This document shows, one piece after another, positions 21,732 through 58,700 of a DNA stretch of 64,000 bases. The stretch's first letter is position 1. Every line of letters begins with the position of its first letter. Origin of the DNA: Podarcis vaucheri (lineage: Eukaryota). Under the pieces are notes generated by a model. The model was not told the origin of the DNA. It worked only from the letters and a program-made list of their open reading frames with translations, and ran no database searches. The position numbers and the translations under genes are program-made. The stretch is taken from NCBI GenBank assembly GCA_965113315.1, contig OZ220367.1. One strand, 5' to 3'.

Positions 21732-22086
21732 GGGACGCAGGTGGCGCTGTGGGTTAAACCACAGAGCCTAGGACTTGCCGAACAGAAGGTTGAGGGTTCG
21801 AATCCCCACAACGGGGTGAGCTCCCATTGCTCGGTCCCTGCTCCTGCCAACCTAGCAGTTCAAAGCATGTCAAAGTGCAAGTAGATAAATAGGTACCACT
21901 CTGGCGGGAAGGTAGACGGCATTTCCGTGCACCGTTCTGGTTCACCAGAAGCGGCTTAGTCATGCTGGCCACATGACCTGGAAGCTGTACGCCAACTCCC
22001 TCGGCCAATAAAGCGAGATGAGCGTTACAACCCCAGAGTCGGCCATGATTGGACCTAATGGTCAGGGGCCCCTTTACCTTTACCTT
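21732..22086 (+). mobile_element. Sauria SINE (Squam1-type), full length
   Basis: tRNA-like head with B box GGTTCGAATCC, (ACCTTT)n tail and 16-bp TSD TACATGACAACATTTT at 21716-21731 and 22087-22102. Confidence 0.92.
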
Positions 22087-25000
22087 TACATGACAACATT
22101 TTGTTGCAGGCCCCACTGGTCTAAGCAGATCCCTGCATCTTGTTGCTTTGAATCTTATGTTAATTATTCACTTTGTGAAGGTATACCTCCTTTTGCCTGT
22201 GTTAATCCTGCCAATGAATCAATTTCATTGCCTGACCCTGCGTTTTAATACTATGAAAGAAGCATGTTCCCTCCTATTCCATAATCTGCAGTTTGGGCAT
22301 GCATCTAGATGAAATAGCCTGACAGTGCACACTGTACATGAGTAGCTCATTAAAAACCACTGCCATATCCCTTAAAAGGAAGGAGTAAACTCACAGGCAA
22401 CTCGCATAATAAACAGAGTCGAGCTGCCTTCCACGTCCCTCCCTCCCTCCCAAAGAAACATCCCATTTGTCAAGCTGTCATGTGAACCTACAAGGATGCC
22501 TTGTGACTAAATTTGTGAAATACCACAGAACATTACCAAGAAAGCACTTGTGCATAGAATTGCCGTGTCTCATTTCTCAATTATATGTCAATTAGATGCT
22601 GTACATTTTGTCTCTCGTCCCCATTCACATGAGTCACTTCAAACATTTAAATGACAAACACTGGCCTGAACTGTGGGAGGGATATGCTGCTGTTTACTAT
22701 TAGGGACATTCTGCCTTCTAAGTCGTAAACAGCTGTGCAGGATTCTGTCCTAGCATATGAGCTGGCAGGAGTTTTCTTCTTTCTTGGTGTCAGGGTGATG
22801 TTGGAATTAACTTAGACAAGTCCCCAACTGGCTTGCTAAATATTGCTTTTTTGGGGGGGAGGGGGAAAGCTTCCTTAAAAGGGAACATAATGTTTGGCTG
22901 ATGCTTTATATAGCAGAGCTGGCTCACACTGAATTAATGTCCCATATGAAATTTAATGTTGCTCCCCCAGCTCACATCATGTTGTGGTATTGCCTCCTCA
23001 AGGTTGTCCCAAAAGTAGTTCCATCCCCCTCTTTTTTATATAAGTAAATTGTGTGAAGGGAAGGACCTGAAATGGGAGCAGTTATGAGAGTTGCAATACC
23101 CTTGTTCTAGCCCCTATTGTCCCAAGAGGTGTGAGGCATTTGTGTTACACCATTCAGGGTTTGTTTTGGGTTTCACAGTAGCCCCCTAGATTTGGATAAG
23201 CCAGGCAGCTGCATGTCCTTCATATTGTGTTGAGCTGTCAGGAATGCGGGGAGTGGAAGAGGGTTAACAGTAGAAAGCAACAATTATTTTAGTGTTAGTA
23301 TTAATGATGAAGTGAGGTTGACTCATCACCTTGGACCTTGCAATGAACATCCATGAATTTTCATCAGGTAGTGGGAGGTTCATGAACTGTTTGCTTGCAT
23401 ATGCATCAAAGGGCAATAAGGAGTCATGCATGCCCATTACAAAGTTTGCTGAAGCTCCATGGCTGGTGGAATTTTTCACGTGCCATATAGACATTACATA
23501 TGCATGGTAGAATTCTGAGTGATGGCATACAGGAGCTCTAGCATTACTTAGCAGTGATGTGTTATAACTTAGTTAATGAATCCCCAAATATTGCAGGATA
23601 TCTACATTTTAGTGCAATTAAGGGAGACTTTGTGGTTTATGATGTGCCTGGCAGTGACTGGTTTAGTTGCTCTAATGTCACAGAAAGCAGAAATGTCTCT
23701 GACTGCCATTGGCTCAGCAGCTCAGAGCTCAGAAACAAGCATGGCAGGCAGCAGGAAAGGCGATATGGAAGAAATGGGGGGTTTGGAAAGGAAAGGTCCT
23801 GAGAAAGCAGTGCCAATCCATCAAAGAAAGTAGGGTCCAGAGAATGGAGGGAAAGCAAAGGCTGGGGTGGTGGGGGAGAGACTGCAAAGAAAAGAAAACT
23901 GAGATGGCAAAATTGCTCATGACCAGGAAATGCAAAGGTGAAGAATTGCATATTAACTAGCAATAAAGAGCCCTATCTTTGGCTATAGACATCGAGTATT
24001 CCCATATTTCAGGAAACTAATTTTCTACTAGATCTCTTGCTCATGGCAATACTACAGTCTCATGGACATGATACCATACATACCAGCCATGAAATGTTTA
24101 CAAAGCCATCCCAATATCCATGGCACGAAGGAAGCAGAGCAATGTCACCTGAGCCACTATTGAGGATTTCTCTTAGCAACTACTCCTGATATAGCTTAGC
24201 AACCTTGAAAATTCAGGCTAGTAAACACGAGATACTGAGAAAGCATATGGAGGGCTGATGCATAATCACTCTGACATTCACGTTTCATGATCTAAGCACA
24301 CCATGGCAACTTGATTGTTTTCGCCTCCCATGCAAATTTGCTTTGCAGCCACACATATTTGTAGTTGTTGACTATCGCATACTTCAGTCTGATAGCTAGG
24401 AGAAGAGCTGGGTGGGGGGAGCTCTGATCTCTGCCAATAACCCAGGATAGCAGGTATACTATTTTTCCCTGAAGCAAGACAGAAACACAAGATGCTGTAA
24501 GGTTGTGTTTGCACTCACCAGTATGTTGTTAAGACAAGCAGACAGTCTGGCCCCATGTATTTCTGTCCCAGGATAAGACCTGGTTCCTGCCACCTCCCTC
24601 TGACCATGCTTAGAGAAAGCTGCCAGACTCAGAGACTCGGTTTAACCAACTGCTCGGTTTCCCAACTGTCCCTATAGCCCGCACACCTCTGAAAGCATCA
24701 CCCCAGCAACGCATTCTTCAGTGTTCCAGAAGCCAACTGCCTCCCCAGATTACCTGCTCTTTGGCAGATGTTGTGTCAGCAGACACATCTTCAGACACTT
24801 CTAGAAGTGTCCATGTATGAGAGGGCAGGGCAAATGAGATGAACTGCTGTCAAGATCTAAACCAGATCAAGGAGAACAGCCATGCTTGAATTGGTTTTCT
24901 GCTAAGTAGCCATCTAAACAGGTCAGGCAGAATTGCTTTGTTCCACCTTGGGAAGCTCCTCATGTCATGTGGATATTTCCTGCCCTGTCAAGATCCGGTG

Positions 25001-25988: not shown

Positions 25989-28900
25989 GTAAGTAAATGG
26001 TTGGAGTTTTCCTTATTTTTTGCCACTGTTTTCATGGCCTGGGAACTTGAGGGTATGCAGAGCTGCTGGAGGAGAACTCAATTCATCCTTGGTGTTTATA
26101 AGTTTATAACACTTTCCTAGGATTTTTAGTTAGCAATTGGTTGGTTGGTTGAGGCAGCTTTTCCCATGGAAACATGGTGAGCGTATTTGCACAATACAGT
26201 TAAATTTCTTAAAAAGTCATTTTCTCTCCTTAAGGAGCTTTGTGATCTGTAGTTTGGGGGGAGGGGGAGGGGGGAATCTCCTCCCCCTGACCAGAGGCTG
26301 TTCTCAGCATTATCCAGCTAAGGATCCTGGTGGAGAAAGCCATGTAAAAAAAAGAAGAACTTCTTGGATAAAATCAGTAGAACATTGCTGTGCAGATATG
26401 GCCTAGATACTTTTGTTTGGTTGTTGAACTGTCAGCTTTCTCACTTTGCTGGTCAGATCTTTGTTATTATACACTGCATTTTGAATTTTCAAGCTTTTAT
26501 TATTTGGATTTGGACTGGGGAGACCTCGGCTCAAAGCTCACTTGGTAGCCTTAGGCTAGTCACTCTGTCTTTGTTAACCGGCTTCGTAGGGTTATTTTGA
26601 GGAGAAACTATACCAACCTGAGTTACTTGGATTAGAGGAAATTCATGAAAATAAATATAAATAGCAAAACAAATGCAGATTGCTGCATCCAGTGTTTTAA
26701 AAATGCACTTTCTGAGTATACACCTTCGTAAATTCCTTAAGACAGCGTACTGATTTCCAGACCTCAGGGAAATAATTTGATCGTGCCATTTCAACAATGA
26801 GGGGCTTATCTCCCACAAAAATTAAGTGAATAAATTTTCATCTGAGGTGTGTTAGAAAGTATCCACCCTTAAACTGGGATGACATTTGGCAGTGGCTTAA
26901 GCCTCTTGGTTTGCATACTGCTGTGATTGTTGAGTATTTAGGTACAGTCATAAATTGATTTCCAAATGCCTTGTGACTCGAACGTTTTGGCTCCCAAACA
27001 CCGCAAACTCGGAAGTGAATGTTCCAGTATGTGAACTTTTTTTCGAAGCCAAATGTCCGCTGTGGCTTCTGTGGCTTTTGATTGAGTGCGAGAAGCTCCT
27101 GCAGCCAATCGGAAGCCGCACCTTGGGTTTTCAAAGGTTTTCGGAAGTTGAACAAACTTCCAGAACGGATTCCATTTGAGAACTCATGCTACTTGCCATT
27201 TCATTTTGTCCCACTCTTATCAAGCTTGATAAGAGTGGGACAAAATGAAATGGCAAGTAGCATGAGTATTGTTATATCTCAGAGGCCCCTCTGAGGAGGA
27301 GTCTAATCGGTATTTCTTTCAAAATAATAATTGGTTTCCCATCAATTACCAATTTTTTCTGGTAACTTTCTCTCAGAATCATATTTCTCATTTCTGTCGA
27401 TTTAAAAATCACTAAGCAGTCACCTGGGGCTTTTTTCAGTCTGTTTTGTTTGGGTTTTATTTTTATTCTGAAAGCATTTTCTATTGTTTGTGCGACCTCT
27501 TCTTCTTTCAGTACGAGCCACGCCGCAAGTTCTTTAACAATTTTTCCTTTTATATCTTCCTCTCTTTCTTCCCCTATCCCTCTAAATTTTAAATTTAGCT
27601 GCTTTTGTTTCATCTCCATCAAGGCTAAATTATCTAAGACCTGATCTTGGGTTTTACTCAGTTCTCCAAAATTTTCTTTAGCTTTTTCAGCTTCTTTTCT
27701 CTGGTCTCTTAAATCTTTCTGTATTTTTTTGTTTATTTCTTCTAAAGACTTTGTTCTAACTGTAAGGTCTTTTATCTTATTTGAGAGTTCCCCTGTAACA
27801 ACTTCAATCTTTTTATCAAACGATTCTTGCATCTCTCCTAACTTTTTTTCTATACGTGTTTCATTTTGCCTAAATTCCTCTTTTATTTTCAACCATAATG
27901 CATCTAGGTCTTTTATTTCCTCTTGCCTTGAGGTTCTTCTGTCCATTGGGGTCCCCACAGATTTCTTCCCGTCTTTCCCCGACATCTGTTCACCCTCCTC
28001 CTCTCCTCACCCCCTCCCTTCCACAATCAATTAATCTAGAGGTTTGTAGCTTTCCCGAAGCGAGACATACAATCTTGAATCTTATAACTGTCACAGGGTG
28101 GGTTATAACCTACCCCTTAATTCAATTAACACACTCTTTCTATATTCTCTAACTTATTTCTCTTCCCTGTTTAAATAGTATTTGTGTTATCCTTTGAGTC
28201 AACGTACAGTTGCCCCGTCTATTTCCACAAACCGTACACAATTTGTTCCCTTGCACCGTATTAGAAGCCTTCCCCTCTAATTTGGGGATCTTTACAGTTA
28301 CCTAATAACCAAGATAGGGACGCAGGTGGCGCTGTGGGTAAAAGCCTCAGCGCCTAGGGCTTGCCGATCGAAAGGTCGGCGGTTCGAATCCCCGCGGCGG
28401 GGTGCGCTCCCGCTGCTCGGTCCCAGCGCCTGTCAACCTAGCAGTTCAAAAGCACCCCCGGGTGCAAGTAGATAAATAGGTACCGCTTACCAGCGGGAAG
28501 GTAAACGGCGTTCCGTGTGCTGCGCTGGCTCGCCAGATGCAGCTTTGTCACGCTGGCCACGTGACCCGGAAGTGTCTCCGGACAGCGCTGGCCCCCGGCC
28601 TCTTGAGTGAGATGGGCGCACAAACCCCAGAGTCTGTCAAGACTGGCCCGTTCGGGCAGGGGTACCTTTACCTTTACCTTTAATAACCAAGATAAATTTC
28701 AGTTAGGAGGATAATATGCAAGATACCAAAAATAAAAAGGGGGGAAGGGTTAGGAGGTACTGAAAGAGTAAAATAGAGGGAGAAAAACACAAAGGGGAGC
28801 AATAAAAGAATAGTGCAGTCCAAATAACACAAATAACACGGGGACTTCTCTTTAAATCTCCGCTACTTGTTTAACTTAGTCCGTTCCCTTGTATTGCAGG

Positions 28901-31900
28901 CTCCTGTCCTACCAAAGTTACCTTAAGTCCGAGATCAGGGAAGGTCAAGAACACCGATGATGCTGGGGAGATAGGGTGGGGTAAGAGAAGGGGGGGAGAG
29001 CAGACAGGGAGGGCAACCAGGTAAGTATGCGGGCGGAGGTCCAAACGGCTTTAAAACTGCTCAACAAAGTCTGGGTGAATTTCTCACGAGGAAGTAGGGA
29101 AATCAAATTTGAGGAGTAAAAGTCTCAGGTTCAAATTCGGAGAGTAAGGGTCTAAATTCCAGTTCCAGGAAGAAAAAAAAAATAAGGGTCCAAATCCCGT
29201 TCCAAAAAGAAAAGAGGTTGCAAGCGCCAAAAAAAAGGGGGGGCTGGCCCCACGATGCAAGGTCAGTCCAAGAGAAGAAAGGAGAAAGGAGACCGGAATG
29301 AGATGGAAAAGTCTTTCAAAGTCTCTGAATCCTTCAGGAAAAACCAGCTTCGGGCGCGTGCAATCACGCAACTGCTAACCGGACCTCTGCCCTCAAAGGC
29401 AAACTGTCTCGTCTCACACGTCCGAGCTTGTGCGCTATGTCCCTTTTATTGTTGAGGTAAAATGGCAATAGGCTGAAAAAAAAAAAAAGGACTGGAGAGC
29501 TAAAAAGGAAAATGGAAGAAAAAAAAAGACCTGGGAAGGTAAGTACGGAGAATCTGGGTCGCTCTTATCCCCCCGTCGCAGGGGCTGGGGGGGGGACTTT
29601 GCCTCGCCGTCTCCCTGAGCCGATTTACTCTCCCTTCCCCCTTCGTTCGTCTTCTCCACTTCCACTCGTTCCTCCCGATTCTCTCTTCAGCCTTTAACTT
29701 TCTATTCAAGCTCTCCGACAGTCCGCTTCTCGATACAAAGTCACAGATACAAAGTTTTTAAAGTTTCATTTCATTGTATATCTTTTTTTTCTAGTTACTT
29801 TGCCCCGCGGAGTCTCCAACGGGGGCTTCCCTCTCTTAGTTCTACAGCTGGTGAGTTTTAGTTACTTTGTCTCACTCTTCCAATTAACTCCCAGCGCCAT
29901 CTTAACTCCGAGATACAGTCGGGCTCCTTAAAATTAGTCCGTTAAGTTCTGTTGCGTCTTGGAGTCCTTTCTTCTAATCTTATACTCCAACATTTATTTG
30001 GCAACTCCAGAAGCGACAGTTTTAAAAGGTTTCAGAAATTTGTCGCCTCTTTCCAGTGGGAGCTTGAGACATAGCTGCGCGGGGTCGCAGAGCTTACCAA
30101 ATTGCGTCTTTCGGTCCCGTTGCTCCGGAGTCCTCCCAAAGGAGGGGAAAACTCCAAAAAGCTTCGAACCTTTCCGACGCTGCTGGAAGCGTTTCCCTCC
30201 AGGGGGCCCCCCTGGAGGTTTTGGGGTCGCAGTGCCTTTGCGTTGCCCCTCAAAATCCCCGTGCAGTTCGGAGAAGTCGTGCAGCAACTTCTCCGCGCTC
30301 CCGCACTGCTTGCGAGCCAAACCGGAAGTCCATAAATTGATTTCCAAATGCCTTGTGACTCGAACGTTTTGGCTCCCAAACACCGCAAACTCGGAAGTGA
30401 ATGTTCCAGTATGTGAACTTTTTTTCGAAGCCAAATGTCCGCTGTGGCTTCTGTGGCTTTTGATTGAGTGCGAGAAGCTCCTGCAGCCAATCGGAAGCCG
30501 CACCTTGGGTTTTCAAAGGTTTTCGGAAGTTGAACAAACTTCCAGAACGGATTCCATTTGAGAACTCATGCTACTTGCCATTTCATTTTGTCCCACTCTT
30601 ATCAAGCTTGATAAGAGTGGGACAAAATGAAATGGCAAGTAGCATGAGTATTGTTATATCTCAGAGGCCCCTGATTTCAGGGGCAAGCTGCATCATCACC
30701 TTTTAAAACAATCTGTTCACATTCCCCTCCTCCTGCTCCCACAGTCAAATCTGCCAATTCATGTACCTCTTGAAGGAGGAGAATGTCTGACATACTCAAC
30801 TTTAGTCACACGATAAAAAGTTATTGAGTCCTGCCAGCCTATTAAACCAGTTATGCTGACCTGTAATTGCATTGCACCTAGTAGACAGGCAGTTCCCATG
30901 TACGTGTAAACCCTGGAAGGTTGCTTCTAAATAGCTTGCTCTATTCTTTCCTGACCTTTTAAATGCATACAGCACAACATGCATGTTTGATCTTTCCTTT
31001 ATGATGCTTGGGGGGGCATATTTATCCTTCTATGTATCTATGAATTAGGGGCAAATTCTGAAGGTTGAAGGATTCCAAATACAAACACCAGCTTAAAAAC
31101 AAACAAACCAAAAACTTGTCACATTTAAATTGGGACCAGCTTGAAACTGCATTTGTCTCCTGCTCCTGGCACTAGCCAGCCCTCCCCTGCTGGTTTCCCC
31201 TTTTTCCAAACAAAAAGTAATAGTTATTTTGGGGAAGAGAAGGGATAACCAGATGTGTGGTCTGTCCTTAGCTGGAAATTATGCCCTCCCACCCAAGTAT
31301 ATGTAGGAGTTTTCTATGCCTCCTGAATTGAATCAGGAGACAGAGAAAAGCATAATCACCGTGGTCTTTGGCTATCATTTTCTGCCAAGGACTGTGAGAT
31401 TTGCAGTTTGGTCTTTCAAATCAATTCAAGAAGGGGGAATTGCACAATCTGCAACAAGAAAATACAATATTTCAATAGTGGCCCATATATTACATGATCC
31501 TTGCCTTTTGGTGCCATTATCCAGGTTATACCCAAGATTGGTGTGCCATTCTTGCCCCATTTCATAGAATCATGGAGTTAGAAATGACACTGAGGATCAT
31601 CTAGTCCAGTCCCCTGCAATGCAAGAATAGGCAGCTGTCGCTTACGGGGATCGAACCTGCAACCTTGGCATTATTAGCACCACACTCTAACCAAGGGAGC
31701 TATCCAGCTGTCTCCTTACACTGCTGACATAATTAACAATGGAAACAAAAGTTGTTTTTATGCAGTCTTTGCGCAGATTAAATTCTGGGGCCATGTTAGC
31801 ACACCGTTATAACGACCAGCTACTTCCTCACCATTCCCAAGCAGAAATTGTCCCACACCCATGTCTCCAACTGGATACAAATTCCAGAAAGGCACAAAAA

Positions 31901-46700: not shown

Positions 46701-49700
46701 AAGCTGGAGACAGAGCTTTCTGACAAAATGTGCTTTAAAGCCGTAGAGCAAGCCGCTAAAACTTTGCATCAAAGGTATCCCTTAATTTTTCCTTTCTTTT
46801 ATGGCTGTTGTGTATGCACTTGAGACAGCTGAAAGAACCAAACTGCACCCCCCCCCAACACACACCACACTGATGCAAAGCCTTGAGGATGCTGAGCTAA
46901 GCATTAGACACACCTGCTCTCTCCTTTTAATGCTCTCTATTGGAAGAAAGACAGAAAGGGATTTGTAAGACCAGCTGAGACTTTAGCCTAACACAACTTA
47001 TTTTTCCTTTTGTTTTCATATGCCACTGTTAATGATTCAAAGATCTGGCACTTGGGGTGCCATCTGGTTACCCAGAAGTCACCGTCAAGGAAAGTCTCCT
47101 TGGCTCATTGATTAACCACTCTGCATTCTTTCCTAGGCAAAGCTTAAGTCCTTTGCTGCCAAGATCATTCAGCTCCTGAAAGAATGGACTGAAACATTCC
47201 CCTATGACTTCCAGGATGAGAAATCTATGAAAGAGCTGAAGGAAATTGCTCACAGGATCACACAGTGTGATGAGGTAAGGGGAGGAACACACACACATGC
47301 AGGTGGAACAGATACCACTACCACCCGTCCCAACCTATAATTTGTCTTGACAGGTTGCAAATATTTGCTAGATGCGTTGAGGCACCACAACTGCTGACCA
47401 TGACTTGCCTAAATGGTATTAACAAGAGCAGAGGAGTTGGCCCTTTCTGCCTTTTCAGGGACCTCTTACTCCTCAAATTTTATGTACAGCTGACCACACC
47501 ACCACTATTGAGTAACTCACGGTACTTGCTACCATTGCAACTCCCTTATGGGACCGGTCTTAATGTAATCCTAGCAATGAGAGAGCCCAAACCCCCATAT
47601 ATGTGTTTCACTTGCTCCCCCTAATCTCAAGTGGTGAAGGCAAGAGCCCAGAAAGGCCACTGGGATTGGGGGAGAGGGAGGTATCAATTGGTAGGGGGCA
47701 TGGGGCGGTGGGGGCAGCCCGTCCCACATGTTATTCCAGGGGGGTAACAAAAAAAACCCAGTAGATCGTTGCCGCACCAATTGGCCCCCCGGGTGGATCA
47801 CCGTCACGCCGATCAGCCCCCTGGGTGGATTGCCACCATGCCATTCGGCCCCCCTGGGCGAATCAACCCACCCCCGGTTGCACGGCATATGCGCCTCTCC
47901 GGGTGCCCGAGCGACTAGCTCCGCCACTGCTTAGGGAGGCCCTGAGGTTTGCAGAAGAGCAAAATGTTGTGTTTTTTTAAAGTAAAACAAAAACAGGTCT
48001 AAGTGGGTAGCCCTCTGCTACATCAGAAAATACAGCTAAATGAAAACTGAGTGCACTCAGTAGCCAGGGACACTAAGAATCAATTGGAATAGAAAAACAA
48101 CAGTTGGAAGAGAGTGGAATGTCATGTCTAGAAGGAACGGCTGCCTAGAACCCTGGACAGAAGCACTCCTTCTAGGGAGGGAGGGTACACTGCAACATTT
48201 TCTTGCAGGCTCCATTTGTGTGGCATACTATTGGATAGTGCTTGGATGTTCGCCATATTCCTGTAAGGCAACTGGCCTATTATTTTTTCTTACTGCTGGT
48301 GTGATGTCAACATATTCCTTTAGAATTTCCATATCTCACTGTAAAATTGGAAGGGGCTTTTCAGGTAGGTTGGCGGCCATCTGTCACGGATGCTTTAGCT
48401 GAGTTTCCTGCCTTGCAGAGGGTTGGACTAGATGACCCTTGGGGTCCCTTCCAGCTCTACAGTTCTGATTCTATATGAATTGCCTGTGCATCAAGGCACA
48501 GCCTACCAAGTGGTGCCAAGGTACAAAATTCACACATGGCCTTGTGATTAAAAACTGCCTATTGTACCTTATTTTATGTTGATAAATCAAATACATTCTG
48601 AAAGCACACAGGTAGGAGGGGATAAAAGGCTCTAACTAGATCCTTACAGCATAATCCTAAAGTTGTTTACTCCAAAGTCTAGCTGAGTTCAGTGGTATTT
48701 GCTTCCTGAGTCTATGTCTGGTTAGGCATGTTGCCTAAGTACTATAAAGGGTAGAGCGAGAAGAATGCTGTCTTTTTGAAATGACTGTTCCAAATATATA
48801 TTTGAGATTGGCCCCAGAGGTTTAAGAGTGACAGGCATGTGTCTGTTTAAAATGTTAATGGCCAAAAAGACTAGAGTGGTGCAACAGCTTTGGCAGCAAT
48901 GCATGATGATTGGAGGTGATGCTTTGATATTAAAGGTGTTGTCAAGAGTAGCATGACAAGTTTCAGGATGTCAGCAATGTTGTTTACCTGCATTTTATTA
49001 AGCTGTCACAACCTGAAGTCAAGAGGAAATGATTAAGGCTATGTGCTGGGTTTTTAAACGGTGTGTGCACAAACACTCGTACAATCTTACACTAAAGGAA
49101 AACAATTATATTTGTTTTATGTTCAGTTTTCATTAACTGGGTCATTTTTAAAATTGGAGGAAACACTCCTGTCTCCTCCTTGTCTCCCATTCATCAGCGA
49201 GGCTATACCTGAATCAAGAATAATAAGTTGTAAAAATAATTCATCTTGGTAAAGGCCTATGCTTCTCAGGCTGTAAAACATGCCTACAAATATCCAACAA
49301 GATCAACAATAGCATGCGAGCCAATAAAATGGGGACAGGGAGAGTTGTGTATATGTGTTTGCATACCTATGCAAAAGAACAATAAACTGCTATAAGGCCA
49401 CCTGCTTATGATGTACAATTTCTGTACATGTCTACTCAAAAGTAAGCCCCACTGCCTTCAGTGTGATTTACACTCACGTAAATGTACCTAAGGGACGCGG
49501 GTGGCGCTGTGGGTTAAACCACAGAGCCTAGGATTTGCCTGTTCAAATCCCCGCGACGGGGTGAGCTCCCTTTGCTCGGTCCCTGCTCCTGCCAACCTAG
49601 CAGTTCGAAAGCATGTCAAAGTGCAAGTAGATAAATAGGTACCACACTGGCGGGAAGGTAAACGGCATTTCCATGCACCGTTCTGGTTCGCCAGAAGCGG

Positions 49701-52700
49701 CTTAGTCATGCTGGCCACATGACCTGGAAGCTGTACGCCAGCTCCCTCGGCCAATAAAGCGAGATGAGCACCGCAACCCCAGAGTCGGCCACGACTGGGC
49801 CTAGTGGTCAGGGGTCCCTTTACCTTTACCTTTAAGTGTACCTAGGATATCAGCCTGATCTAGACATATGTCTTTTCAATTGAGAGCCATGTGCAATCCT
49901 TCACATTTAAGTGGTAATAATGTGGGAACATCAAATCACCATTTGAAAAATCAGATCTTGCTGATCTGAAGATTGCATACTCACTCTTGTCAATATGTCC
50001 CCAAAATGCAATATCTGAAGTATCTGTGGAAACAAAGGGGAGGTTGGTGCATGCCAGAGGCGCCAAGCTCTGCCCGACTTTGGGGAGGAGGCCCTTTGCG
50101 TGTGCATGACATCACACATGTGACACTCTGCCAGGAGGCCCAGTGAAATTAACCTCTGCTGTAGGTTTAGGCTAGCCAAGGTAACTCTCTCAGCCCATGT
50201 TTCTGATGTCTAGGGCATCCTAGGGACATGGTTCTACTTGTCAGACTTTTGTGCTTATATTCATATGCTGTGGTAACATAGCAGTCAGGTAACAGCCATA
50301 AAATAAACATGCTGACATTGGCAATGTCGCTTGCCGTGGAGACTCAAGGATGACACAGACAGGTTGCTTTTGCTGCCTGAGTAAGCAAAGATGCAAGACA
50401 TACCAAGGATTTCAGACATGAGCAGGGCCCAAGTGTATTGCGTAGGCAGTTCTTTAAAGTCTCGGTGCAGTAAGGAATACTAAAGGAAGATCAAGCAGCC
50501 TACATGCCTATGCAAGCAGGATGACAACATTTATCAAGGTTCATGGCCATGTGCTTGAGGTCACAATTGAGCAACAAGCCAAATTAACACAGACGTCAGC
50601 AAGGAGAGTTTATGCAGACTCAGTCAGTTGTGGCAACATTGTCCTTGCTTATATATGTAACTAGAGCTTGTGTCTAAGGTGAGAGGTTATTGTTCCTCTT
50701 CCGCAGGACTCTAGCAAGGCTATACATTACACAGATAACATGGAAAGCAGCCTGAATATTCTTGACTAGATGCCTCTATCAAGGAAAGGTGGAGCATCTT
50801 AATATACTCACTTCCCCTCATTTTCTCCTGCATTCCTGATGTTGCAGCTGATGTTGAACTGTGCTTTGGGCTAAGAGTCACTGAGCTGGTTCTTTCCTTG
50901 ATTGTTAGCTCCCATGTGATTTGAAACAAAACCGTCCAACTGTTAACTGAACTAGAATCATAGAGTTGTATAGTTAGAATCCTGAGGCTCATGTAGTCCA
51001 ACTCCTTGCAGTGCAGGAATATGCAGCTCTCCCATGTAGGGATCAAACCTGCAACCTTGGCATTATCAGCACCACACTCTACCCAACTGAGCTATCCTAG
51101 GCTAACTAACTGCTGGCTGGCTGGCTGCCTAAGACAATAAACTGTAAGCTGTTCTAGTAGTTCTATATGACTAGAATGGATTGGCAGTTGTAGCTTCCAT
51201 TCAGGGGCATTGTTGACTCAAGTCATTTAAATACTTAGCATCCTCCCTGTTTTGGCTGGTATCTCAAATCACCTGGCAATCCTACACAAATCAGAATGAT
51301 GATGCAATTCATCTGCAAAAAGCTCTCCAATCCTCCTGAGGGCTTATTCAGCACATGAACTGACTTGATACTGAATTCTAGTATCCCAGTCAGAAATCTT
51401 TCCAGCGTAATTCTGATTAACAAAGAGGCAATCTAGAATTTCCTCAGCCAGGAATAATTAACAACAGTCTGTTTTATTGATTAGGAAAATGGAACTGTGA
51501 AGAAGATCATCAGCCAGATGACGCAGAATCTACTGATGACTCTTGCGGCACGCAATCAGTACCAGGAGATCAGAGAGAAGTTCCGCCAACCCGTGACTGA
51601 CAAAGGCACAATCCTTAAAACAAAGCCTCAGTCGTCACAGAAGGACATACTGAGTGTTTGCTGTGACCCACTTGTCCTTGCGCAGCAACTCACACACATT
51701 GAGCTGGTGAGTTCCTTTATCTTCCATCTACTTGAAGGTTTAGCAGGGCCAGGGCAAGCTGTTCTCCAGCCGAGCTCTGAGTTACAGCTTGAAGGTTTGA
51801 GAAAAGTGGCTTCTAGATATAAGAGAGACCGAAGGAAGAAGGGAGCCTGGCAGTTACAGAGACAATGAACTCACTTGAGCTGGAGAGAGAAAAGACCACT
51901 TGCGACTGATCACTTTCTCACTCCTGCAACCTCTTTTAGGAGATTCATTGCATTATCAAACTCTTGTTCCTGACTTGGAATATCTCAAGGGGGAAAAGGG
52001 AGGGGGAAGAGGAGTCACAGTCAACGTCAGAAGCTCACTGTCTTCTAAATCATTCTAATGAGTACTTCAGCCATACATGCTACCAGGACTGGTTTCAAAT
52101 GTCATCTCAGAGCAAGGCTAACACACCCAGAGACTAGGAGAGACAAATGAAAGCAGAAATCTTTCCCAAGGACCACCTCTCTTAAAGGTCCAACCACATA
52201 TCTGCATTACTGTCCCCTGGTTCCCCGACCTGGAGTAAGGGATGCCAAATATTAACCTGGAAGCTCTGCTGCTGAATATGCAGCTGTGAAACCACCTGCC
52301 CCACTACATCAATGGTTATTTTGCCCACCCATCACTCCTCTCTGCTGTGCTGGGCGGCTAGAATCTGATCTGGCCCGACAGGGCTGTCTGGCTGTCACAG
52401 CTCTCTGTTCCTCATATGTGTGCTTGCAAAATTGACGGCCTTTGCTATCTTGCTGTATCTAGGAGAGGGTGAGCAACATTTACCCCGAGGACCTCATGCA
52501 AATAGTCAGCCACGTGGACTCCCTGGATAATCACAAGGTGTGTACAAAGTGTGAACACAGTGGCAGTTTGAAACAGGGCTACAGGTAACATTGTGTGCAT
52601 GGCTTATACAGGTGTTTAAAATTAAAGGCAAACTTATCTTGTTTCTGTAACAGTTTAAGTGCTATAATTCCCCCCAAAGAATCTTGAGCATTTTAGCTTG

Positions 52701-55700
52701 GTAAGGGCATGGTATGGGTTAGGATTAAGATCCTTGGCCAGAAATCACTAGGCTACTATCTTCCACCCAGAACTACAGTTTCCAGGATTTCCTCAAGAAA
52801 GAGGATGACTGTTACACCAGACTAAATCCATAGCGCAGGCCACCCCTTGCCAAGCAGGAGCCCTCTAGATACTTTGGACCGCAACTCCCATCAATCACAG
52901 TCCTGTGGTGACTGGAGCTGATGGGAGTTTTGGTACACAACAACTGGTGTAGACATTCCATCAATAGCTGCCCAATCTGCCACATTTAAGCTGACACCCA
53001 GTTCCTATGGCACATACCAAGTTTTTGTACAACCCGTGAATCGAATGTAAAGAAATAGGAAAATTATCACCCGCAGTATTTAGCTAGTTTCTTGAACTGT
53101 CAAACAACCAAGCTGCACTTGGATATGGAAGAATCAAGAAAGGATAGCCAATGTGGTGCCATTCAGATGTTGCTGAACTCTCAACTCCCAGCAAGCTTGG
53201 TAAATATTCAGGGATTATGAGAGCTGAAGTCCAATATCATCTGTAAGGACCATATGGCTAGCTCTGCTCTAATAGGACAGCTCCTGTTAAATAAGCTGAC
53301 TGCACTGATTTCTTCACTAGCTGAGGCTTTCAGTACATTTTAATATATTGTGCATACATATAGCATGAGGCCTTCTTTTCTGTTCATGCTTTATGAGGCT
53401 TAAGCATTGAGGATAAACAAACAAAAAAATATTGCTGGATAAGACAATAGCCCCTATCGCTGCCCCCATCCCCTTTGTCTCTTAGGTGCCCTGTGGATTT
53501 TATTCAGGTAGGAGGGAGAGAGATCCCTATTTGTGAGCTACCACCTACACAGCTGGGAGAACATGTAAAGAGCACCTTATGTAGCAGTTCTTTTCTGCAA
53601 GTTAGCAATTATGGAATTCAGAGGTCAAGGAAGTCTGCAGGGATATTGCACAAGACTGGGATCTGTCTAGACACAACAACAAGAAAAGATTAAATATCAT
53701 AATTCACACCAGTACTTATTATTTTGAGCCTCTTTCCTTAAAGTCCCCAGGTAGAAAAGTGTCATATATTGTTTTGTTTTTTTTTCAACCTTCCTTCAAG
53801 GTTAAAAGCAATTTGAAGTTTCTCAGTTACATACAGTAAGTTGAGTACGCGCACCTTAGCTATTGTTCCCTACTAGCATATAATGTTACTGAACATGCAG
53901 TCATCTCTTAAATATGACAAAATGGGTTTGGACAGTGTGTATTTTCCCCCTGCTTGTCATTCCTAAACACTTATTGAAGACAACATGCAAATCCTTACTA
54001 TTTTCGCAAACACCTCAGGAGGAAAAGCACGAGAAATATACACCCCTTTCTCTCTGAATGCTCTAAGTGGTTTCCCAGACAGCTGTCCAGACCAAAAATT
54101 CAGAATGATGTAAAAGAGAACCAAAATTCTTATTTCTAATGGTGCACTTATAGCCAAAACAATTGGCCATATTTGGGGAGTTCCCCTCCCACAATTATAA
54201 TTGTGCAAGGGAGGAAACAACAGGGCCTCACCCCTTCCTTAGGGGGTGTTGTCAGTGCCCAGACTGTGCATCTCACACTTGTACAGTGTGGCTGCCCACT
54301 TGTGGAAGGTTCTCCCCAGGGAGTCTTGCCTGGCACCCTCATTACATATCCAACACTTACAGCAGTCCCATCCCCTGAAGAAGTTACCCTTGCAATATGT
54401 GAGAGGTGCACAGATCAGGTGACAAGGAAGTGACATAGGAGGCAGAGCCAGAGACTTCAGCCCTGCTCCCCGACCTCACATAGGCTGTAATCCTGTGAGG
54501 TGAGGGGCAATTGCCCATGTGGGGCACTTGATTGCTGGAAATGTCTCAAACGGGGAATACTTTTGCATCTGACAGAACTCAGGACATAACATTTCCCCAA
54601 TAATAGAGGGCACTGATCTAGTAAGGAGGATACCACATGGGATGGGGGAGTTCATTTGCCCCATGTCGCCATTGAATCGCAACCTGGAGAGTGTGACTGT
54701 CTTTGAAGCATGCAAGCTGAAGTCACTTGTGTGGAGATGCATGGGTGTCACTGGAAACAACCATTTTTTTGCAAGCGCTTCATACAGGCATAATTTACAA
54801 CCTTTCTTTTGTAGTGCCGAGGTGACGTTACTAAGACTTACACTCTGGAGGCGTACGACAACTGGTTTAATTGCCTCAGCATGTTGGTGGCGACGGAGAT
54901 TTGTAAGGCAAGTACTGACAAGGGAAATGTGCCAGCTACTCTTCCTTCACTCTCGCAGTTTTTGGCCCAACTCATTCCAAACTGCCTTGGCTGAAACTCT
55001 GTATCTTAGCCACCTCCCACCAAGTAACATCTCCTCTGGCTCAGGATGCATACGAATGCACCTGCCCATGCAAAAATGCAATCCTTTACAGAATATTTGT
55101 TGGCACTTGAAGTCAGCTTCCCTTTGTATTTTTTGCACCCATTCCCATCCTATTCTGATTTGACTCACGCTGCGTAGCAAAAGCCCAATTCATACATTCC
55201 CCAAGTAGCATTACTGCTGCTTCACCTGGCTCCATCCCATGCGACGCTAATACTGTAGGCTGTAGTGATATCCCAGGAGGCTCCTTCAGCACTGTATTTC
55301 CTCTTGAGTTCTAGCAGATGTGGCACTGCAAAGTCCCCTGTGACTTTCGCCTCCAACACAATTCAGTGTGTCATATATTTCTGGAACTTTATGGGATGGG
55401 GGCTGGAAATGTATGAACTGGACCACAGCGAGGGAACAGGAATGGGTTTGGTCATATGAACACACATCATGCCTTGTCTAAACCACTGAGCCTCTTGGGC
55501 TTGCCAATCAGAAGGTTGGCGGTTCGAATCCCTGCGACGGAGTGACCTCCCGTTGCTCTGTCCCAGCTTCTGCCAACCTAGCAGTTTGAAAGCACACCAG
55601 TGCAAGTAGATAAATAGGTACCGCTGTGGGGGGGGAGGTAAATGGTGTTTCCGTGCACTCAGGCTTCTGTCACAGTGTTCCATTGTGCCAGAAGTTGTTT

Positions 55701-58700
55701 AGTCATGCTGGCCACATGACCCAGAAAGCTGTCTGTGGAAAAACGCTGGCTTCCTCAGCCTGAAAGCGAGATGAGCGCTGCAACCCCATAGACACCTTTG
55801 ACTGGACTTAACCGTACAGGGGTCCTTTGCCTTTACCTTTTTACCTTTTACATCATGCCTTGTAACAAACAGTACATCTTCACTTTAGAATGAACGGTGT
55901 GTAGGTGTGGAGATGCAATAGTCTTTGTGGCTTCGCTTGATCTGCTTACAGTGCCAAACTAAAACATACAGCATGTGCCTCTTTCTCAAACTCCATATAA
56001 TAAAAAGGAAGGGAGAATTGTGTGCCTGTGACATGAAAGTATCTAGTATCATGAAAGTGGCTGAGAGCTGAACAGCTTTCTTAGAGTTTTTGAAATCCAA
56101 TATAGAGAATATGTAGGCTTACCTCAACAGAAGTGTCTTCTCTGTATGCAAACAGGTGGACACCAACCGCACATAGGATTCATAACATGTCAGAGTCTGA
56201 CCGGAAGATGGAAATGTATCCCAAAACATCATCTTCCAGATGTACAAAATCAGTATGGTAGTGAAAAACTTACAGTGATAAATTTTGGAGTGCATTTTTC
56301 CAAAATTCTTAGAGTCATGTAGCAGAATCATGTGGTAGCATCCTTCCTGGGTTATATCACATTAGATTGCAGATAGACAATGACATTTTTGGATGCTCCA
56401 CTATGTCAGTTAATTTTCTGCATGTAAAATCTTGCACGCTCGGAGAAAGGTTCTAGCATAGCCTCTCCCTACATGTGATTCTGCCTTTAAGAAAAACGTT
56501 TGTTAGCCCTCAGAAACAAAACTTGAAAAAATAATGCACAAAGCAAGCATTGATCCACTATCAACAAGGCTAGTGAACAGTGACTGATAATTGTACCAAA
56601 CCCATTAATTCTCAGAAGCCAATTACAAACAGCATAGGCAAAAATGCAACTCAGCAACACGTCATGTGGGAAGCAAATGTGTTTTTAAAAAAACAACATG
56701 GGGCAGTCATTCAGACAAAGCTAAGAATTTTAAAACCCTTTGTTTTCAGTGGGAGAGATTTAAGTGCATGCCTAAGTCTCCCACTTTAAATGAAAAATGT
56801 AAAGATATTTTTCCCACTGTGGCAAACTGCAGTGGTGGCACCAGGACTCTCCTGGAAAAATGCCTCACTCGGGGGGGGGGGACCTAGGACCTTCCTTGCA
56901 GTGAAGAAGAATAAAGTGCATGGGGTGGCAGACATGTTCACTTTGCTAGGTAGTAGCATCAGGACTAGCAGCCAATAATGAGGTGAGCGGGGGTGAGGGG
57001 TTGGCAATTTTTCGCTACTTTGCCTGAGACTGTTTTCTTGCTCTGCCCTGCACAATTATTATTGTGCAAATGCTGTTGATTAGTCTCATTTCCCTGCAGA
57101 TTTGAAGTGAGCTTGGTGCTTTACCTCAGGATAGCTTATCAACAGTAACGTTAAAAAAAGCTGGATTATAAATCCTCAGTGCTATAGTGAAGCAAACCCC
57201 CTGCTTCCACCCTACCAAAGCACACCTCCCCTGGATGGAATATTTCCTATTTTCTACATTTGAGGACAGAATGTTTTAAATGTATTTGGTATTCCAGTCA
57301 CCAAAATCATTCTTTCTTTGCTTTACAAAATTTCCCCAACGCCTAGTTTCTTCCTTACATAAGGCTACAGGATTCCAGCATCCAAAGACATACAAAGTTT
57401 TCATGATTTTCCAAAGATAATGGCTCTTTAAACAAAACAGGGATCTTAGATCACTATCACAAAGGCTTACTCTAAAAAAGGGGGGAGGTGACTCAACTCA
57501 GGATAGAAACATCAACACCTTTTCCACTGAAATACTCTTCCTCAAAGCCTTTAAAAAACAAACAAATGTTGTTTGCTTGCGGGATTGCCATGCCTCCATT
57601 GAGTAAATGCGACCCCACTTCTCCCATTCAAGGTTTGCATTTTAAATTTCAGGTTGTGAAGAAAAAGCAGCGGACAAGAATAGTGGAATTTTTCATTGAT
57701 GTGGCAAGAGAGTGCTTCAACATTGGAAACTTTAATTCCATGATGGCCATTATCTGTGAGTACTCTTCTGCAAGGCACCTGTGGGCAATGTGTGTGACAG
57801 CGTCAGTAGAATGATGGTGTTTGAGTAGATGCAGCATCCCGCTGAGAGTGCTGCACTCTGGATGACAAATGGGCATCAAAGATATTACCAAGTGAGACTC
57901 TCCAAATAATTAACTGGTAAGCGGTGGGAGATCAAAAGAAGAGACAGGGGAAAGACAGGTAAAAGTAGTCTGCGCTTGCCAAAGAGACGAGCCACACAAG
58001 ACCTTTTCATGCATTGCAGAATGGCAAATCAGAGTTTGATGCTCAAAGCATATTTGACGGAGAGGGACAACCAATCCTGGCTCCCTGGAGAGTGAGTCAG
58101 TGCATGTTTGCAAAAGGCAAGTGTGCCTCTTCTTGTCTACATAATCTAGTGCACACTTAGAATATTTGAAGTCTATGCCTAATGTGTGAATTGTCCTGAT
58201 TACATAAAAGGACTTTTGGGGGGGGGATAATCAGAGATTATCCAAATCCTGGAAATGCAAACTTCTCCCAGCTTCAAACCTTTGGCACAGTTGTAACAAA
58301 AGTGACCAAAAGTGGACACAGAATTGTTTTCCCAATAGCAAAATTTCCCTCCATCCTGCGTTAAAACATGTTTAAGGTACGCAACAGCCGTCTTCATTGG
58401 GATTAAGCTAAGAAGAATTCCTGTCCTAGACTCAAAACTGGCATTGTCACCTGAAGAGGAAACACACATAGATGAAGGCTGTGGGGGCACATGATCAGCC
58501 CCACCGGCTGGTGTCACATGACTGCTCCAGTCCCACCTTGCTTTAAAGTGCACTTTTGCAGCCAGCAGCCTTCTGTATTCCTGGATGTTCCCTGTGTGAG
58601 TTAAGCTCTTGGAAGATGAGGGTTTTCACCCACTGCAGAAGTGCACTTTAAACATGCAAATGGGCTGAAAGAGTTGTGCAGCCCCAGTTAAGAGAGCTGC

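Follow-up and report, generated by a model that had tools for sequence, protein, structure and literature searches.

L1 retrotransposons canonically insert by target-primed reverse transcription (TPRT), which leaves an intact 3' end with an A-tail, frequent 5' truncation and target-site duplications (TSDs) of 7–20 bp (PMC1920257). Non-classical L1 insertions (NCLI), which are endonuclease-independent (Morrish 2002; Sen et al. 2007, PMC1920257), are defined by 3' truncation, absence of poly(A), a non-consensus site and absence of a TSD, often with a target deletion; 3'-truncated, poly(A)-less L1 pieces of this kind are known at breaks in the human genome, and 18 of the 21 NCLI loci are also 5' truncated by at least 3 kb (PMC1920257). 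A further departure is described in Servant et al. (2017, PMC5223499), where L1 TSDs longer than 100 bp make up fewer than 10% of HeLa inserts and reach 5.3 kb in cells deficient in nucleotide excision repair (NER), and where 'tailless' L1 inserts are seen in the same NER-deficient data set. Here we describe a locus in a 64-kb stretch of the genome of Podarcis vaucheri, a lacertid lizard (the window, in whose coordinates all positions are given), at which a tailless, 3'-truncated L1 fragment lies between two identical 342-bp copies of host DNA. Our leading explanation, which we hold tentatively and at somewhat less than even likelihood, is a single aberrant event in which a tailless L1 was reverse-transcribed at two breaks separated by 342 bp. 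The locus is a rare aberrant outcome of L1 insertion that combines known aberrations, and represents no new kind of element or mechanism.

The locus consists of a 342-bp block, hereafter block A, whose two direct copies enclose 3040 bp. Repeat search and string comparison showed the copies to be 100% identical, with the match extending 0 bases outward on either side (T versus C at the left, C versus G at the right); a reading made earlier from the letters of the window (the sequence-only reading), which had reported identical 342-bp direct repeats abutting a 3040-bp insert, is thus exact. A perfect match of this length cannot have arisen by chance. The repeat reads CATAAA...GCCCCT, with ACAGT and GATTT as its outer flanks and CTGAGGAGG and CCGGAAGTC at its inner borders, and each copy runs directly into unique flanking DNA. 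A simple tandem duplication is ruled out, since the insert (CTGAGGAGG) does not begin again in the right flank (GATTTCAGG). The zero substitutions in 2 × 342 bp are compatible with an age of up to ~2–5 million years, depending on the substitution rate, and this age fits an insertion specific to the reference lineage; on the best reading, the insertion is young and lineage-specific in a lacertid lizard genome. Recombination between the identical 342-bp repeats, which lie 3 kb from each other, could also excise the insert; the allele may therefore not persist for long and could serve as a population marker.

On the minus strand the insert carries the beginning of an L1 ORF1. An open reading frame starting with ATG at 27985 runs for 231 codons to the junction with no stop or frameshift, and its frame continues for 6 codons into the repeat. 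A word-indexed protein search returned seven matches, all of the named ones from lacertids (Podarcis, Zootoca); the best were two Podarcis muralis entries annotated as 'L1 transposable element RRM domain-containing protein' (75% identity, E 1e-87). A profile of the ORF1 family matched the human L1 ORF1p structures 2ykp/2yko (E 1.4e-6) across the coiled coil, RRM and C-terminal domain (CTD). Pfam gave no match for ORF1 or for its full-length lizard homologues, and the identity of ORF1 rests on homology together with the PDB profile match. In the alignment, the window protein ends in IPIRLL where the Podarcis and Zootoca homologues of 330–357 amino acids go on with RKREGYKQ..., and the homologue alignment and the 2ykp/2yko match together identify the fragment as an L1 ORF1 cut at the border between RRM and CTD. 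Neither a T-run nor a poly(A) is present at 27291, and the insert has no ORF2 and no other open reading frame longer than 101 amino acids. The earlier statement that the L1 stops inside ORF1, with no ORF2 or poly(A), is therefore borne out, the cut falling after codon 231. The insert is a fragment of an L1 rather than a complete one, and cannot move alone.

The 3' junction of the insert reads ...CTCAGAGGCCCCT followed by CTGAGGAGGAGTC. The strand that would have primed ends in ...GGCCCCT, and the resulting junction, GGCCCCT/GATTTC, is no L1 endonuclease site and differs from TTTT/A. At the cut the window reads RLL-L-R and the lizard homologues RLL-RKREGY; because the homologues do not read RLL-LR, the five nucleotides at 27291–27295 (CTGAG) may be filler templated by snap-back, and not part of the L1.

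To follow both junctions at the level of reads, we used Logan contigs (k=31) from four runs, which are the source of all read evidence given here. In X15, a run from the same species that has 0 differences from the window across 1.7 kb of flank and may be the assembly's own sample, the contig of the left flank stops at 26978 and that of the right flank begins at 30643. Each of these points lies exactly 30 nt inside block A, where branch points are expected at k=31 if the junctions from insert to block and from block to insert are both present in the reads. The exact-match insert contigs listed for X15 (28681–28838, 28881–29027 and 29112–29294) have depths of 29.6–35.1, as against 28.8–34.1 in the flank; for these contigs, the equality of depth indicates one homozygous locus with no identical source copy elsewhere in X15. 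The observation is real: the anatomy is as described above, the reads are consistent with both junctions, and the structure occupies a single locus.

The other three runs give hints of an empty site. In X2 and X17, which come from two sister species with flanks ~1.5–2.4% diverged from the window, the left-flank contigs continue to 26992 with no branch at 26949. In X1, which carries the same species label as the window and has unique flanks ~1.3% diverged from it, the right-flank contig reaches 30620, a limit set by the palindrome within block A, with no branch at 30643. These data suggest empty sites with a single block A in X1, X2 and X17, one side being readable in each; a further contig end of X17, taken up below, contradicts this. 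Window alleles missing from the X1 insert contigs were not taken as evidence of absence, since the X15 contigs also lack the window letter at several insert positions; the contigs appear to drop low-depth variants.

Block A itself is host DNA, and is neither a long terminal repeat (LTR) nor the terminus of a mobile unit. Summed contig depth (at least 90% likeness) is 17,000–58,000 in the bins 27005–27185 and 30444–30624 in all four runs, as against 10–35 in the unique flank, and marks a mid-repetitive stretch of ~220 bp with more than 1000 copy-equivalents, of which no other copy was found within the 64-kb window. This high depth stops short of both ends of the block: at the left, ~14 bp lie outside the repeat family, as judged from the end points of the sister-species flank contigs, and at the right a perfect palindrome is followed by a low-copy 23-bp tail. 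The 181-bp bin of the palindrome, which also takes in the beginning of the L1 piece, has a depth of 129–574, or ~1% of that of the neighbouring repeat bin. Folded as a DNA hairpin, the palindrome reaches -55 kcal/mol (z -14.8). Against Rfam it gave only sub-threshold microRNA-like hairpin matches, such as any perfect palindrome gives, and a scan of 26500–31200 (E up to 1) found no hammerhead or other curated RNA family, which rules out a Penelope or hammerhead origin of the palindrome. Depth confined to the inner part of the block, together with the lack of an RNA family match, indicates local host DNA that contains a transposon copy. Of the earlier description of the block as old host sequence made of a diverged miniature inverted-repeat transposable element (MITE) and a palindrome, host origin and palindrome stand, and contig depth replaces the MITE with a mid-repetitive family. 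An LTR element is rejected by the absence of TG..CA ends, which had been remarked upon before and is evident from the ends of the repeat, of a 4–6-bp TSD outside the repeats and of a primer-binding site or polypurine tract (PBS/PPT). Block A also holds two occurrences of TCGGAAGT, at 27009 and 27141. A 7-bp inverted repeat (CCCCTGA TT TCAGGGG) at 30668–30683 spans the ancestral border between the block and its right flank; the right limit of the duplication falls inside this small hairpin, 23 bp from the palindrome.

The remainder of the insert is presumed to be the 5' untranslated region (UTR) of the L1. Contigs from a conspecific run and from both sister species, at several times unique depth, cover 27965–29904 as one unit, skipping a nested short interspersed element (SINE). 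A CpG-rich block at 29891–30330, the last ~440 bp, has a CpG observed/expected ratio of 0.8–0.97 and is the sole support for 30330 as the presumed 5' terminus. The SINE, which was absent from the sequence-only reading, lies in the 5'UTR in the orientation opposite to that of the L1 and is flanked by a perfect 14-bp TSD, TAATAACCAAGATA, at 28303–28316 and 28681–28694. It belongs to a very abundant family (summed contig depth above 10^6), three diverged copies of which occur elsewhere in the window (21732–22088, 49491–49835 and 55486–55840). The contigs of X1, X2 and X17 contain the joint 28302>28681, which skips 378 nucleotides, and this joint indicates that other copies of the L1 family are without the SINE; the SINE was either carried by the source L1 or landed after the insertion. 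Within the 64-kb window itself, sensitive blastn found no further copy of the L1 family. A second joint, 29910>30173, reveals some family copies in X1 and X15 from which 262 bp of 5'UTR are missing. Depth in the bin 30082–30262, which represents the first ~250 bp of the 5' region, is higher than in the adjacent interior of the 5'UTR in three of the four runs, X2 being the exception. On the minus strand a YY1-like motif, AAGATGGCG, is found at ~29886–29894, ~440 nt downstream of the presumed 5' end, and an ETS-like motif, CCGGAAGT, at the presumed terminus itself.

Table 1. Coordinates of the features of the locus (window positions), with the basis of each assignment
Feature	Positions	Strand	Basis or remarks
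Left copy of duplicated host block (A1)	26949..27290	.	identical to 30331-30672; sister-species contigs enter from the unique left flank up to 26992
Mid-repetitive element in block A	~26963..27181, also ~30345-30563	.	contig depth; limits approximate
Perfect spacer-less 86-bp palindrome, 43-nt arms	27182..27267, second copy 30564-30649	.	repeat search
8-bp inverted repeat CTCAGAGG / CCTCTGAG straddling the junction of A1 and insert	27278..27295	.	
3040-bp insert: L1 5' region, truncated ORF1 and nested SINE	27291..30330	-	homology, X15 contig depth
L1 ORF1 codons 1-231: coiled coil and RRM, CTD missing, frame open	27293..27985	-	protein homology and profile match
Presumed L1 5'UTR, ~1.97 kb without the SINE and one copy of its TSD	27986..30330	-	contig coverage, CpG; 30330 only presumed 5' terminus
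Nested tRNA-type SINE, 364 bp	28317..28680	+	B-box-like GGTTCGAATCC, (ACCTTT)n tail
Right copy of duplicated host block (A2)	30331..30672	.	X15 right-flank contig starts at 30643, 30 nt inside A2
TTTT/AA L1-endonuclease-type site	30701..30706	+	on the would-be priming strand, 32 bp to the right of A2

How does the locus compare with the described systems? The large-TSD and tailless inserts (Gilbert 2002/2005 and Symer 2002, as cited in Servant et al. 2017, PMC5223499) resemble it in being L1 inserts with a host duplication longer than 100 bp, and non-poly(A) starts are reported among them. As described there, those inserts arose de novo in cultured human cells, mostly NER-deficient ones, whereas the lizard locus is a germ-line allele that is cut deep in ORF1 and has an apparently complete, though presumed, 5' end. 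Its duplication exceeds 100 bp; that the empty site has a single block A is only suggested by contig ends in X1, X2 and X17, one of the X17 ends pointing the other way. With the endonuclease-independent or NCLI class (Morrish 2002; Sen et al. 2007, PMC1920257) it shares 3' truncation, the absence of poly(A) and a junction off the TTTT/A consensus, but it differs in its 342-bp duplication, in showing no visible loss of target and in having kept the 5' part. Because the definition of NCLI requires that there be no TSD and an exact 342-bp duplication is present, we do not file the locus in that class, although its priming may have been similar.

Canonical TPRT has in common with the locus an L1-derived insert and a staggered-break geometry that gives flanking direct repeats, but the lizard locus reverses the canonical pattern at the 3' end, in 5' truncation and in TSD length, with 342 bp rather than 7–20 and GGCCCCT/GATTTC rather than TTTT/A at the junction. 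The sequence-only reading had called the pattern the opposite of canonical TPRT and suggested a non-canonical insertion. Both descriptions hold for an L1-derived insert that is tailless, 3'-truncated, flanked by a 342-bp duplication and joined at its 3' end off any endonuclease site. LTR and pseudo-LTR (Penelope-like) elements likewise present identical direct repeats of a few hundred bp around ~3 kb, but here relatives show the repeat joined directly to unique flanks, the interior consists of an antisense piece of L1, and no hammerhead is present.

Any explanation must cover three features jointly: that the duplication is long, that the 3' half and tail are missing, and that the 5' part has been kept. 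A single event could account for them as follows. Where block A ends on the right, 23 bp past the perfect 86-bp palindrome, a plus-strand 3'-OH (...GAGGCCCCT-3', no L1-endonuclease site) would prime within ORF1 of an L1 RNA rather than on its poly(A), perhaps after a 5-nt snap-back extension. Synthesis of the cDNA would then continue to the 5' end of the RNA; with the opposite strand broken 342 bp upstream and its end joined to that of the cDNA, fill-in of both 342-nt single-stranded regions would duplicate the block. The predicted product is a tailless 5'UTR with the coiled-coil and RRM portions of ORF1, flanked on each side by an identical copy of the host DNA. Where priming began, the order of events in a single step and any part played by the palindrome are inferred. 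If the event took this course, the locus would be one of the rare cases recorded in nature, rather than in cultured mammalian cells, of an internally primed L1 cDNA that ran to the 5' end and produced a target duplication of several hundred bp, and it would link tailless inserts with large TSDs, which have so far co-occurred mainly in repair-deficient human cell lines.

A number of points weigh against this one-step account: firstly, a perfect TTTT/AA lies 32 bp past the duplication on the priming strand, which would be found within 35–50 bp by chance in 3–5% of cases and which fits a two-step history; secondly, human endonuclease-independent insertions are without TSDs and usually delete target DNA (PMC1920257); thirdly, there is no near-identical source L1 in the same genome, the insert-specific k-mer stretches listed being single-copy, and the source must accordingly have been lost or be missing from the individual, which is plausible given that full-length L1s are at low frequency in Anolis (PMC3787681); fourthly, a cDNA run to the 5' end of the RNA is an assumption, 30330 being only a presumed 5' terminus for the L1 family; fifthly, on the right, the X17 flank contig begins at 30643, like the filled allele, which contradicts the left side of X17; and finally, the k=31 contigs, to which all the read evidence belongs, cannot span a 342-bp repeat. 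As to the X17 start, a heterozygous single-nucleotide polymorphism at 30642, a longer palindrome or a block-to-insert type of junction elsewhere in that genome are possible causes.

The TTTT/AA site raises the main alternative, which the sequence-only reading did not include and which we regard as somewhat unlikely: a canonical full-length TPRT at 30701–30706 with a TSD of ~374 bp, extending from 26949 to the equivalent of 30704, followed by a deletion of ~4–5 kb that took away everything from the final ~32 bp of the left TSD copy through the poly(A), 3'UTR and ORF2 to the C-terminus of ORF1, and left the junction 27290/27291. A deletion ending in the left TSD copy would give exactly a repeat that abuts a truncated ORF1, and the endonuclease consensus is perfect, on the correct strand and only 32 bp past the end of the repeat. 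Large TSDs are documented for otherwise normal L1 inserts (PMC5223499), and full-length L1s are selected against in lizards, so that a deleted derivative would persist more easily (PMC3787681). On the other hand, this history needs two rare events during a time in which 2 × 342 bp gained no substitution, no remnant of the deleted part is found, and the TTTT/AA could be present by accident with the chance given above. If it is true, the locus would be an ordinary decayed L1 with an unusually long TSD.

The hairpins in and beside block A allow a variant in which L1 RNA patched a structure-induced break, and which we think quite unlikely. The palindrome, or the small hairpin at the border of the block with its right flank, would have led to a nick or stalled fork, then to the 5-nt snap-back, to reverse transcription primed in ORF1 and to the 342-bp duplication. 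If true, this would be a case of endonuclease-independent, RNA-templated repair with a long duplication in the germ line of a non-mammalian vertebrate.

An event at the level of DNA, with no reverse transcription on site, is improbable. Here a 342-bp tandem duplication would have been accompanied by a templated or captured 3-kb filler from an L1 locus that already had the SINE, through replication template switching (fork stalling and template switching or microhomology-mediated break-induced replication, FoSTeS/MMBIR) or through end joining at a break with long overhangs. The order of duplication, insertion and duplication, the short inverted repeat at one junction and the fragile perfect palindrome in block A are all in keeping with such an event, and a nested SINE is what a genomic DNA copy would contain. 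However, one boundary of the insert lies at the apparent (presumed) start of the L1 promoter, which is unexpected for a random DNA fragment, and the insert contigs listed are single-copy in X15, so that the donor locus is not in that genome.

We consider it very improbable that the layout is an assembly artefact, as the sequence-only reading had allowed, with a heterozygous or misjoined region resolved into block, insert and block although no molecule holds both copies. For example, a circle or array of block and insert might have been threaded into a site with a single block between its flanks; the two together give the same k-mer graph, and k=31 contigs do not cross the 342-bp repeat. The X15 contig ends nevertheless fit both junctions, and the depth of the insert contigs listed (29.6–35.1) matches flank depth (28.8–34.1), that is, single-copy depth. 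Moreover, the 3.7-kb structure is shorter than a typical long read, assuming a long-read assembly.

Least probable, and only barely credible, is a composite or partial-tandem retroelement (with pseudo-LTRs, as in Penelope-like elements) or a Campbell-type integration of a circle of block and insert through genomic homology to the block, for although block, insert and block amount to 1.1 tandem units and the X17 contig end at 30643 could mean a block-to-insert type of junction elsewhere, block A has no hammerhead or other feature of Penelope-like elements, no TG..CA, short TSD or PBS/PPT is present, only the inner ~220 bp of the block have a high copy number, the insert pieces listed are single-copy, and a circle would require a pre-existing junction of block and insert, for which there is no clear evidence. 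The single-copy depth of the insert contigs listed rules out a multi-copy composite unit, and the composite mobile unit proposed earlier also fits poorly with a palindrome bin at ~1% of the depth of the adjacent repeat bin.

A metagenome scan with the ORF1 alignment and a protein search with short pieces across the junction of block A and insert each returned no match. Most of the flank alleles by which X1 departs from the window (26100–26914 and 30620–31500) are common to both sister species. Together with the divergence of this run from the window, they suggest a deep intraspecific lineage, introgression or mislabelling.

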